Below are positions 21,967 to 24,297 of a DNA stretch of 64,000 nucleotides, one piece after another. Below the pieces are notes generated by a model that was given only the letters and a program-made list of their open reading frames with translations, did no database searches and was not told where the DNA came from. This DNA is from Trichoplax adhaerens (Eukaryota; Animalia; Placozoa). The DNA lies in assembly GCF_000150275.1 (NCBI RefSeq), contig NW_002060965.1:558001-622000 (forward strand). Direction: 5' to 3'. Positions within the stretch are counted from its first letter, which is position 1; every line of letters starts with the position of its first letter. Made by a program: the position numbers and the translations under genes.

Positions 21967-24297
21967 CTAGAATAATTTAGCAACAACAAGACCAAATATC
22001 GTGATCAACAAATGCGTCATGGTAAAAATACTAAGAGCGCCACCCGTTAATGGTGGCTTGTTTTGTGAACATTTGCTTCCATCAATACAAACTCTCCTAA
22101 TGGTTACAAATGGCGTTGAAGCGTGCTTACTTATAGCATAACTATTTTTGTTGTAGTTACCACCAATGGCAAATATGAAATAGTGACATCCATGTAAAGT
22201 CTTATCATTCTGTGTATCTGTAGTATTAATTTTACGATAGAAATTTAATAAAGTTACGCCGTTTACTAAAGATCCATTGACTAAATTGACATTTCCAATG
22301 GCATCGACAGCTGGTGGGGCATAGCCATTTACAAAACGATCTTTCAAGGATGGTATTCCACTCGAAACCCATCCAACGATAGCATCGGTATTGGGCATCT
22401 TGGTATCGTCGGAGATACCTAAGGCAATCCATTTATCTGTTTTTGCAGACATGGAAAAGTGGACAGTGCCATCATTGTAAACGTTCCAATTCAAGTTGTT
22501 GACGCACGCTCCTGCAGCACATCCAGTGCCCCAGCTGCCAGCGCAATTACCCGTGGTTAATTTAGTGCCACCATAAAAGTTAAGCGATTGACGACCGCGA
22601 TTTTGATAACCATGGTATTTTAGCTCATCGTCTCCGTAGTAATCATTCGCACGATGTGAGTTAACTAAGCCAGATGGAAACTGATGCGAGAATGGTGATT
22701 TCTGTCCATAGGCATAAATGACATCCATAATGGTATCTTTGATTTCATGATCGGTTTGACCGTCAGCTGTTAGCTTTTTACGCCATCTTAAAGTTGTAAT
22801 ACCATTGACCTCAGAACCAACGGCAGCAGTGATGCTGTCCGTTTCACCGTAATAGGCATCCATTCGTGGTGTACTACGATCACGAGAATAGTAATCAAAT
22901 AATCTGAAAGTGTTACCGCGAGCACTACCAATGACCATATCCATGCAGTCCATAGGATGGCTTACAGGGCCGCCAGCAGCACCACCGCCTTCGGAGTTGC
23001 CACCTTCGCCTTCCGGCTTGGTAGTGCCTTCGCCTTCTGGTTTGGTAGTACCTTCTGCGTTGCCTTCTGGTTTGGTTGTACCTTCTGCATTGCCTTCTGG
23101 TTTGGTTGTACCTTCTGCATTGCCTTCTGGTGCTGCAGTGCCCTCTGGTTTGCTTGTACCTTCTGCAGCTGCAGTACCTTCAGCTGCTGCAGTACCTTCA
23201 GCTGCTGCAGTACCTTCAGCTGCTGCAGTACCTTCTGCATTGCCTTCTGGCTTAGTAGTACCTTCTGCATTGCCTTCTGGTTTAGTAGTACCTTCAGCGT
23301 TGCCTTCTGGATTACCTTCAGCATTACCTTCAGGTCTGCCTCCAGGTCCAATCAAAAGGCCAGCTGCAGCTCCAGCGGGAAATAATTGGCACGATGCTCG
23401 CAATCCCTGTGGTCGCCAACCGAGAGCAGCCCAACTCTTGGTTGTGGTTTTATGAATAACTTCGACTTCACTGGATGCACTGATTATTTTATACCAAATC
23501 TCGCTATTGGTATCTAATTTACTATAGGTATATGAAGAGGTATCGCTTGGCATAGCCGTTGTTAGCGAACTTGTTTTGGCGCACTTATAACCGTATGCAC
23601 CAGCATTGCAAAAGCATTGCTTCAAAGGATAGTAATAATCTTGATTGATGGCGATACATTGACCTTTATTGTTGCAATCTGCATTGGTTTCACATTCATT
23701 TGTATATTGGCAACGGTCTCCACTAGACATGCTATTGCTGCACGTGCATGATGGAGAGGCATTATTACAGTTGGAAGGCATACTACCGCCGTTGTAGCAA
23801 TCGAGTTGAGTACATTGGAAATTTTTGATTTCGACATCAGCGCAACTCCAGAAGATATAAGGTCCGCTGGTTGTGACCCATTCTCTGGCATTTCGAGTTA
23901 ATCGCAAAATGCAGTGATCGCAAGTAAAACCGCTCGGTAGCATAGCCAAATAATTTTGAACCGTGTTATTATTGGCTGAAAACCATGGCGTACCAGAACT
24001 GGTTGGTGTTAATTCGTGAGCAATAGTGCCGTTGCGATGCAAAATTTGGATGCGGAAACCACCACCATGGGGGAAAGCCATATGCCAAGTTACATCGACA
24101 GCTGAGCCAGTCATTAATTTAGTTTTATAGACACCTTTTCCGGTAGCATTTTCAGGCATACCGCACGGACTACGCGTTCTGACATTGTCTAAAAAGTCCA
24201 AATCGAACATTCTTGCTTTAGGAAAACTCAAGCGAATATGTGCGTCGACAGCAGTTAAGGCCACAAGGCCTAACAAGATAAGACTCAACGTTTTCAT
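21967..24297 (-). CDS. Secreted, probably GPI-anchored protein: N-terminal His-brace (LPMO-like) domain, 2 EGF-like repeats, 2 DOMON domains (the first interrupted by a PEG/AEG repeat); single exon, 776 aa
   Basis: Signal peptide ending AVDA|H; Cys-rich EGF-like pair; DOMON signatures WAALGW...HPMDCMDMVIG...LRWRKKL...KYHG and WIALGIS...KMPNTDAIVGW...FYRKI...SKH; hydrophobic C-terminus with no cytosolic tail. Confidence 0.88.
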   Translation of the reverse strand: MKTLSLILLGLVALTAVDAHIRLSFPKARMFDLDFLDNVRTRSPCGMPENATGKGVYKTKLMTGSAVDVTWHMAFPHGGGFRIQILHRNGTIAHELTPTSSGTPWFSANNNTVQNYLAMLPSGFTCDHCILRLTRNAREWVTTSGPYIFWSCADVEIKNFQCTQLDCYNGGSMPSNCNNASPSCTCSNSMSSGDRCQYTNECETNADCNNKGQCIAINQDYYYPLKQCFCNAGAYGYKCAKTSSLTTAMPSDTSSYTYSKLDTNSEIWYKIISASSEVEVIHKTTTKSWAALGWRPQGLRASCQLFPAGAAAGLLIGPGGRPEGNAEGNPEGNAEGTTKPEGNAEGTTKPEGNAEGTAAAEGTAAAEGTAAAEGTAAAEGTSKPEGTAAPEGNAEGTTKPEGNAEGTTKPEGNAEGTTKPEGEGTTKPEGEGGNSEGGGAAGGPVSHPMDCMDMVIGSARGNTFRLFDYYSRDRSTPRMDAYYGETDSITAAVGSEVNGITTLRWRKKLTADGQTDHEIKDTIMDVIYAYGQKSPFSHQFPSGLVNSHRANDYYGDDELKYHGYQNRGRQSLNFYGGTKLTTGNCAGSWGTGCAAGACVNNLNWNVYNDGTVHFSMSAKTDKWIALGISDDTKMPNTDAIVGWVSSGIPSLKDRFVNGYAPPAVDAIGNVNLVNGSLVNGVTLLNFYRKINTTDTQNDKTLHGCHYFIFAIGGNYNKNSYAISKHASTPFVTIRRVCIDGSKCSQNKPPLTGGALSIFTMTHLLITIFGLVVAKLF
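22990..23335 (-). repeat. Coding minisatellite: 30-bp (PEGNAEGTTK) and 18-bp (AAAEGT) units
   Basis: About 5 copies of the 30-bp unit flank about 4 copies of the 18-bp unit; all are in frame. Confidence 0.92.

Follow-up and report, generated by a model that had tools for sequence, protein, structure and literature searches.

Lytic polysaccharide monooxygenases (LPMOs) require an outside electron donor, and in fungi this donor is a separate DOMON-type cytochrome. To our knowledge, no natural fusion of an LPMO with a cytochrome has been characterised so far. Here we describe a gene of the placozoan Trichoplax adhaerens in which an LPMO-like domain and two DOMON domains share one polypeptide. 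The gene occupies positions 21967-24297 on the minus strand of a 64,000-nucleotide stretch of DNA (NCBI RefSeq assembly GCF_000150275.1, contig NW_002060965.1, positions 558,001 to 622,000), referred to below as the window. It is an unannotated member of a widespread family, that of the insect gene nahoda, whose function has not been studied, and the covalent joining of an LPMO-like copper domain to DOMON cytochrome-type domains is confirmed as an observation. We give a probability of roughly 55% to the reading that the product is a secreted, probably glycosylphosphatidylinositol (GPI)-anchored surface redox protein that acts as a heme-to-copper relay.

Several described systems come close to this arrangement. 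In dopamine beta-hydroxylase (DBH) and MOXD1, a copper oxygenase is joined to a DOMON and fed by ascorbate through cytochrome b561, and AIR12 is a GPI-anchored DOMON cytochrome. The b561-DOMON proteins (FRRS1/SDR2 and the plant proteins CYBDOM and AIR12) are grouped here with DBH and MOXD1. The cytochrome of fungal cellobiose dehydrogenase (CDH) and of CcPDH, family AA8, is fused to a flavin or pyrroloquinoline quinone dehydrogenase, and its LPMO partner is a distinct protein; the heme ligands of CcPDH are Met83 and His182 (PMC6881789). In the AA15 enzyme TdAA15A of Thermobia domestica, His1 and His91 form the copper brace and Tyr184 is the axial residue, and AA15 proteins have ten conserved cysteines in five disulfides (PMC5823890). 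The fungal X325/Bim1 proteins combine an LPMO-like sandwich and a histidine brace with a GPI anchor, and X325 has an equatorial Asp ligand (PMC10952591).

The only text that we found on the architecture described here is a remark by Voshol et al. that sequences combining DOMON/EGF modules with LPMO_10 form an early branch of the LPMO tree, outside the named AA families (PMC6950343). Literature searches for LPMO with DOMON and b561, for CYBDOM with LPMO, for a Trichoplax LPMO and for the TRIADDRAFT identifiers of the paralogues returned nothing. No functional study of nahoda was found, and papers name the gene just within gene lists.

The fusion places both partners in a single chain, an arrangement shared by sponges, placozoans, insects and a green alga, and some relatives add a transmembrane b561. 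It yields a model, open to direct testing, of how electrons reach extracellular copper, and a biochemical hypothesis for a named but unstudied insect gene. It also hints at a second, membrane-bound LPMO-like lineage in animals besides AA15.

Domain order and family membership

The gene is a single ATG-started open frame of 776 codons, free of in-frame stops and without obvious introns. Its parts are listed here in window coordinates, all on the minus strand.

21967-24297, minus strand: whole open reading frame (ORF), 776 residues plus stop, intronless; fourth T. adhaerens paralogue of the nahoda-type LPMO-like/EGF/DOMON family
24241-24297, minus strand: signal peptide, residues 1-19, with cleavage inferred at AVDA/H
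23821-24240, minus strand: LPMO-like histidine-brace domain, residues 20-159 (Pfam LPMO_10, alignment to 5msz, structure model, Foldseek and VIA-align matches, conservation)
24238-24240, 24067-24069 and 23851-23853, minus strand: codons of the candidate copper-site residues His20, His77 and axial Phe149
23578-23820, minus strand: cysteine-rich linker, residues 160-240, two teneurin-type epidermal growth factor (EGF)-like modules with 12 Cys
22546-23565, minus strand: DOMON1, residues 245-584, second Pfam DOMON stretch, split by a disordered loop
22984-23358, minus strand: low-complexity Gly/Glu/Ala/Thr/Pro loop, residues 314-438, 125 residues inside DOMON1 just before Met449
22951-22953 and 22612-22614, minus strand: codons of the DOMON1 candidate heme ligands Met449 and His562
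22048-22545, minus strand: DOMON2, residues 585-750, with the best Pfam DOMON stretch at 598-712
22396-22398 and 22123-22125, minus strand: codons of the DOMON2 candidate heme ligands Met634 and His725
21970-22047, minus strand: C-terminal tail, residues 751-776, small residues (TGGA) and then a hydrophobic stretch up to the last residue

In all long relatives the domain order is fixed: a signal peptide directly followed by His, the LPMO-like domain, two teneurin-type EGF modules, DOMON1, and one to eight DOMON2 units. Relatives were found in sponges (Geodia, Sycon), placozoans, a hemichordate, annelids, molluscs, nematodes, a nematomorph, chelicerates and insects, and the green alga Bryopsis supplies a non-animal relative. 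The window protein, used as query, is 34% identical to a Sitophilus protein, P0008, over 94% of its length (E 3e-122). With the Neodiprion member as query, the search returned orthologues that are called "DOMON-like domain-containing protein nahoda", "Nahoda protein" or "nahoda" at NCBI. These span bees, moths, bugs, beetles and a sea spider, and weevil proteins including P0008 occur in the same list. Because weevil proteins that match 94% of its length sit among nahoda-named orthologues, the window protein was assigned to the nahoda family.

An earlier interpretation of this DNA, made from the letters alone and called here the sequence-only reading, had expected the same architecture in other invertebrates under annotations that mention DOMON and EGF only. 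That expectation was borne out by the nahoda family, whose NCBI names omit the LPMO-like domain. All motifs that it had quoted were found in the ORF translation at the residues it had given, with codon positions verified: P26, R29, C45 and G46 in FPKAR/PCG; H72 and H77 in WHMAFPHGGG; C126 and C129 in CDHCILR; F149 and C152 in YIFWSCADV; M449 and H562 in HPMDC...KYHG; and M634 and H725 in KMPNT...SKH.

It had further proposed that His20 becomes the mature N-terminus, and the family agrees with this. The signal peptide MKTLSLILLGLVALTAVDA lies directly before His20, with Val at -3 and Ala at -1, and in 116/116 relatives among the best 150 profile matches the mature-start His, at residues 17-36, follows A, G, S or C just after a predicted signal peptide. 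We infer cleavage at AVDA/H from the -3 Val/-1 Ala rule together with this constant setting of the His in the relatives. For the linker, the Pfam EGF_2 match of the window protein is weak; 38 of 46 relatives match EGF_TEN or EGF_Teneurin, and the family profile matches teneurin and Notch EGF structures.

The hydrophobic tail that the sequence-only reading had likened to a GPI signal is present: TGGALSIFTMTHLLITIFGLVVAKLF runs from small residues to a hydrophobic end and, judged by eye, has the pattern of a GPI-attachment signal. Placozoan, sponge and hemichordate relatives are similar, stopping 0-13 residues past the hydrophobic stretch (0-8 in the Trichoplax paralogues). The window protein is probably GPI-anchored at the cell surface. 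In bilaterian relatives, a SEA domain and a transmembrane helix are instead followed by a cytoplasmic tail of 70-250 residues. This is also the difference between the window protein and Drosophila nahoda with its arthropod orthologues, which it otherwise resembles in homology over the full length, domain order, a low-complexity loop in DOMON1, the His/His/Phe triad of the candidate copper site and both Met/His pairs.

Three algal or protist relatives (P0010, P0047 and P0066) carry a C-terminal fusion to cytochrome b561. P0010 comes from run SRR19264472 (L005:128-3661) and P0047 from Bryopsis, and the fused relatives have at least four transmembrane helices.

The candidate copper domain

When residues 1-170 of the window protein were scanned alone, Pfam LPMO_10 was matched at 30.4 bits against a cut-off of 23; a scan of the full-length protein returned DOMON only. 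The sole significant sequence relative of the N-terminal domain in the PDB is TdAA15A (5msz), at 16-19% identity. The E-value of this match was 0.014 with the single sequence, 6e-4 with a profile of 8 sequences, 1.4e-5 with 18 sequences and 8e-7 with a profile of 46 proteins. Like TdAA15A, the domain has an N-terminal His after the signal peptide, a second His and an axial aromatic residue: the alignment pairs His77 with His91, Phe149 with Tyr184, and the strand C152-A-D with C187-A188-D189.

A profile of the domain was searched against 1.84 billion cluster representatives, which gave 852 relatives at E<=1e-3, with 176 of them reaching E<=1e-10. Among the best 150 profile matches, the first profile position, His20, is His in 116/116 relatives from sponges to insects and the green alga. 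His77 is kept in 141/155 (91%), Phe149 is Phe in 108/120 (90%) and Tyr in 3, and the four cysteines of the domain (C45, C126, C129 and C152) are kept in about 100% of relatives. The complete His/His/Phe triad occurs in 161 sequences, about 120 of them arthropod orthologues. These comparisons support the view that His20, His77 and Phe149 would reproduce the histidine-brace copper site of AA15 and AA10.

The AlphaFold2 model of the domain has a predicted local distance difference test score (pLDDT) of 74 and a predicted template modelling score of 0.73. Its best Foldseek matches are AA15, AA11 and AA10 LPMOs (5msz at E 3.7e-5), and the top match in VIA-align is again 5msz, with a Z of 9.8 over 129 aligned residues. 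The LPMO-like N-terminal domain put forward by the sequence-only reading is thus supported: LPMO_10 is over its cut-off, an AA15 enzyme is the only significant solved relative, the His is invariant with His77 and Phe149 at about 90%, and the top Foldseek matches are all LPMOs.

Strict membership of the CAZy family AA15 was considered and rejected, given the 16-19% identity, E-values of 6e-4 to 8e-7, and four cysteines against ten. The window domain has Tyr or Phe two residues before the second His, where TdAA15A has Ala89, and Tyr147 in place of Glu182. In view of the low identity, the four cysteines, the aromatic residue for Ala89 and Tyr147 for Glu182, the domain is filed as LPMO-like, nearest to AA15 yet not AA15. 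The nahoda-type domain also differs from AA15 in that it invariably comes with EGF and DOMON modules in a membrane-anchored chain, and it has been described as an early separate branch (PMC6950343).

The main rival to the relay reading is copper capture and reduction of the Bim1/X325 type, in which the histidine brace would capture Cu(II) at the cell surface and the DOMON hemes would serve as a cupric/ferric reductase that passes Cu(I) to an importer. Pfam BIM1-like covers the whole domain (residues 19-169 on model positions 2-137 of 140, E 0.0048) and is significant in 9/46 relatives against 3/46 for LPMO_10, but in the window protein it reaches 17.8 bits, under its cut-off of 27, whereas LPMO_10 is over its own. 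LaX325 is a close structural match to the model (VIA-align Z 8.6), yet the nearest solved sequence relative is a catalytic AA15 and not X325, and an axial Phe/Tyr at 90% is an LPMO trait. Copper handling would suit the Tyr in place of the catalytic second-sphere Glu, and a DOMON with b561 is the build of known ferric reductases. A six-frame scan of the T. adhaerens assembly (105.6 Mb, 1414 contigs) gave no match to an endogenous chitin synthase (PF03142), a result that, being read exon by exon, is not proof of absence, and that would also fit copper handling. The GPI-like tail is a further likeness to Bim1 (PMC10952591), whereas X325 has no DOMON or EGF modules, its defining equatorial Asp was neither located nor excluded in the window domain, and no copper transporter is linked within the window. 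On balance we regard copper handling as unlikely, though it deserves serious attention.

The candidate cytochrome domains

Pfam DOMON (PF03351) is matched in two stretches at 138.6 bits against a cut-off of 32.7 (E 1.6e-40). An AlphaFold2 model of residues 245-750, built from 34 sequences, has a pLDDT above 90 outside the loop at 314-438 and about 30 within it. Met634 of DOMON2 lies in the loop that follows the W-x-x-x-G strand and aligns by sequence to chain Met65 of 6jt6, which is Met83 of CcPDH. In a cross-alignment of the two DOMONs, Met449 takes the place of Met634, and His562 is equivalent to His725. The spacing from Met634 to His725 is 91 residues, against 98-99 between the ligands of CDH and CcPDH, and the sequence alignments stop short of the His.

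These positions are well conserved. Among 46 long relatives of many phyla, Met449 is kept in 39/43, His562 in 40/41, Met634 in 31/37 and His725 in 28/36, and the DOMON2 positions M50 and H141 are invariant in 7 units. Across 284 sequences, Met and His are both present in 171 DOMON1 and 202 DOMON2 units, with nearly no aligned substitutions.

Structural comparison with VIA-align, which covers DOMON2, gave the DOMON of DBH at Z 14.6, the CDH cytochrome 1d7b at 14.0 (159 residues over chain 1-183), 6jt6 of CcPDH at 13.9 and the CDH structure 4qi3 at 13.4; unrelated folds score about 6.6. DOMON2 thus resembles the AA8 cytochromes over nearly the whole domain, with Met/His candidates and with Met634 at the place of Met83, and the proposed donation of electrons to a histidine-brace copper is the known role of AA8. 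Unlike the fungal cytochromes, the DOMONs here are fused to the copper domain. Pfam CDH-cyt is passed by 7/46 relatives, the window's own DOMONs lying below it. The sequence-only reading had stated that both DOMONs keep candidate Met and His ligands; the pairs M449/H562 and M634/H725 are indeed conserved across phyla, and the predicted fold of DOMON2 matches CDH-type cytochromes. From this, each DOMON may be inferred to carry a Met/His-ligated heme b.

Like DBH and MOXD1, the window protein joins a DOMON to a putative copper oxygenase, and the DOMON of DBH is the best match of DOMON2 both by sequence (E 3e-8) and by structure. It differs in that the copper domain of the window protein would be a mononuclear histidine-brace sandwich and not the two-copper PHM/DBH fold, and in that the DBH DOMON has no heme and carries Leu where DOMON2 has Met634.

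The protein could instead be an ordinary chitin- or cellulose-active AA15 LPMO with accessory modules, its DOMONs binding sugars in the manner of CBM9 and not serving as cytochromes. An AA15 enzyme is the best match of the N-terminal domain in sequence and structure, an axial Phe is typical of chitin-active AA10 and AA15 (PMC5823890), and some members of the DOMON superfamily bind sugars (Iyer et al. 2007, cited in PMC6950343). However, the identity to AA15 is just 16-19% at E ~1e-5, four cysteines stand against ten, and the DOMON/EGF plus LPMO_10 sequences branch early outside the named AA families (Voshol et al., PMC6950343). The conserved Met/His pairs in both DOMONs, the predicted fold, which matches heme cytochromes, and the relatives with b561 fusions also disagree with this explanation, as does the genome scan with its lack of a chitin synthase match. 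We consider it improbable.

The low-complexity loop within DOMON1 is built of tandem units of 30 nt (PEGNAEGTTK) and 18 nt (AEGTAA), with Tandem Repeats Finder arrays at window 23002-23333, in frame. The possibility that this repeat block is an intron was rejected: the block is in frame, the relatives have insertions at the same loop, and it is modelled as a disordered loop between well-predicted halves. Relatives in other phyla have unrelated P/E/T-rich insertions in the same DOMON1 loop, before the candidate heme Met.

A further explanation is that the protein is a surface glycoprotein with a structural or adhesive role, in which the metal sites are vestigial and the EGF modules and mucin-like loop do the work. 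The EGF modules, the long repeat loop that quickly varies in length, the automatic names "cell surface glycoprotein 1" and "proteoglycan 4-like" among the relatives, and the Trichoplax paralogue TRIADDRAFT_60676, with His77 changed to Asp and Phe149 to Val, would all suit such a role. Yet the candidate ligands rank with the best-conserved columns across sponges, insects and algae, which is unexpected for vestigial sites, and b561 fusions make sense for a redox function only. This explanation strikes us as slightly less probable again than that of an ordinary AA15 enzyme.

A possible electron relay and its genomic setting

Under the relay reading, removal of the signal peptide would expose His20, which would form a copper site with His77 and Phe149, and the two EGF modules would hold the LPMO-like domain apart from the two DOMONs. 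The DOMON hemes would accept single electrons from an outside reductant, either ascorbate or a separate membrane cytochrome b561, and hand them on to the copper centre. The reduced copper would then activate O2 or H2O2 to oxidise an extracellular substrate, most likely a glycan from food, from biofilm or from the coat of the cell itself. The least certain steps are the substrate and the chemistry at the copper. The redox chain finds its strongest indirect support in the b561 fusions of algae and protists.

Trichoplax digests algae and biofilm outside its body. Since four paralogues occur in an animal that digests in this way and seemingly has no chitin synthase, a role at the feeding surface or the cell surface is suggested; because the genome scan had no chitin synthase match, the animal's own chitin is a less likely substrate than the cell coat or glycans of food or biofilm. 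Cytochrome b561 is encoded at no fewer than five loci of the genome, four lying close together in 190 kb (G000:C1412:9073293-9259565) and one at C1389:299827-300198. Their products might serve surface DOMON proteins as membrane electron donors.

Several observations weigh against the relay reading. Tyr147 stands at the place of Glu182 of AA15, the Glu/Gln-x-Tyr/Phe second-sphere position two before the axial residue, and of about 236 aligned sequences, 208 have Tyr in this column; the protein may therefore not follow the classical catalysis of LPMOs. The missing second-sphere Glu might be replaced by Glu139, a conserved residue of the adjacent strand. Together with the lack of a chitin synthase match in the six-frame scan, Tyr147 weakens the idea of a true LPMO enzyme. 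In the model of the LPMO-like domain, the first 35 residues have a pLDDT below 60, and RhoGDI and other generic sandwiches of Ig-like type reach Z 9.0-9.2, near the 9.8 of AA15. Because RhoGDI-type sandwiches come so close to 5msz, the fold alone is not decisive and the sequence evidence carries the LPMO claim.

On the heme side, His725 and His562 are assigned as putative ligands by position and conservation alone, the nearest sequence relative of DOMON2 is the non-heme DOMON of DBH, and the window protein has no dehydrogenase domain to feed the hemes. Co-loss of copper and heme ligands was sought among the relatives, and the few members that lack His77 retain their DOMON Met/His pairs, so the copper and heme sites are not strictly co-dependent. 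Since these members, including TRIADDRAFT_60676, keep the DOMON ligands, the hemes may also work alone.

A broader and more tentative proposal, which we place somewhat short of even odds, is that nahoda is a new pre-metazoan LPMO family in which the copper is permanently wired to a cytochrome relay of its own. A single chain in algae and protists would lead from cytosolic ascorbate through the b561 hemes and the DOMON hemes to the extracellular copper. The animal members, found in sponges, placozoans and groups as far as insects, would carry the module at the cell surface, where it would oxidise a substrate outside the cell. On this view, nahoda would be the first case of an LPMO fused by nature to its redox partner, and the gene would gain its first function.

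The assembly holds three further paralogue loci, whose products are 100% identical to TRIADDRAFT_61434, TRIADDRAFT_61435 and TRIADDRAFT_60676, and in the N-terminal domain the window protein is 50-78% identical to these three. The exact 776-residue product had no identical match in the public protein collection searched, of about 15 billion sequences. As the exact sequence is missing from this collection and its three paralogues are annotated, the window gene seems to be unannotated in this form or differently modelled.

The paralogue TRIADDRAFT_60676 (G000:C1398:198554-199000) has lost the second brace His and the axial Phe through the two substitutions given above, its DOMON Met/His pairs are intact, and its orthologue in another placozoan retains the second brace His. 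On these residues, it may be a copy that has lost copper binding. A fifth Trichoplax gene that matches LPMO_10 lies on the minus strand at G000:C1408:4191484-4192827 and encodes 447 residues. Its signal peptide ends IEA/H, and a CxxC and an FxxCxD strand are present. The roughly 270 residues after these match no Pfam family, and the protein has neither DOMON nor EGF modules. Elsewhere in the genome, at least ten DOMON-matching exon pairs lie within about 100 kb (G000:C1411:2805269-2909042), probably a tandem array of other DOMON genes.

Within the window, the GC content of the ORF is 0.44, against 0.34-0.37 in its flanks. On the plus strand, a neighbouring ORF of 604 residues at 17868-19682 matches THO complex subunit 1 (efThoc1) at E 1e-117, and this gene also appears intronless.

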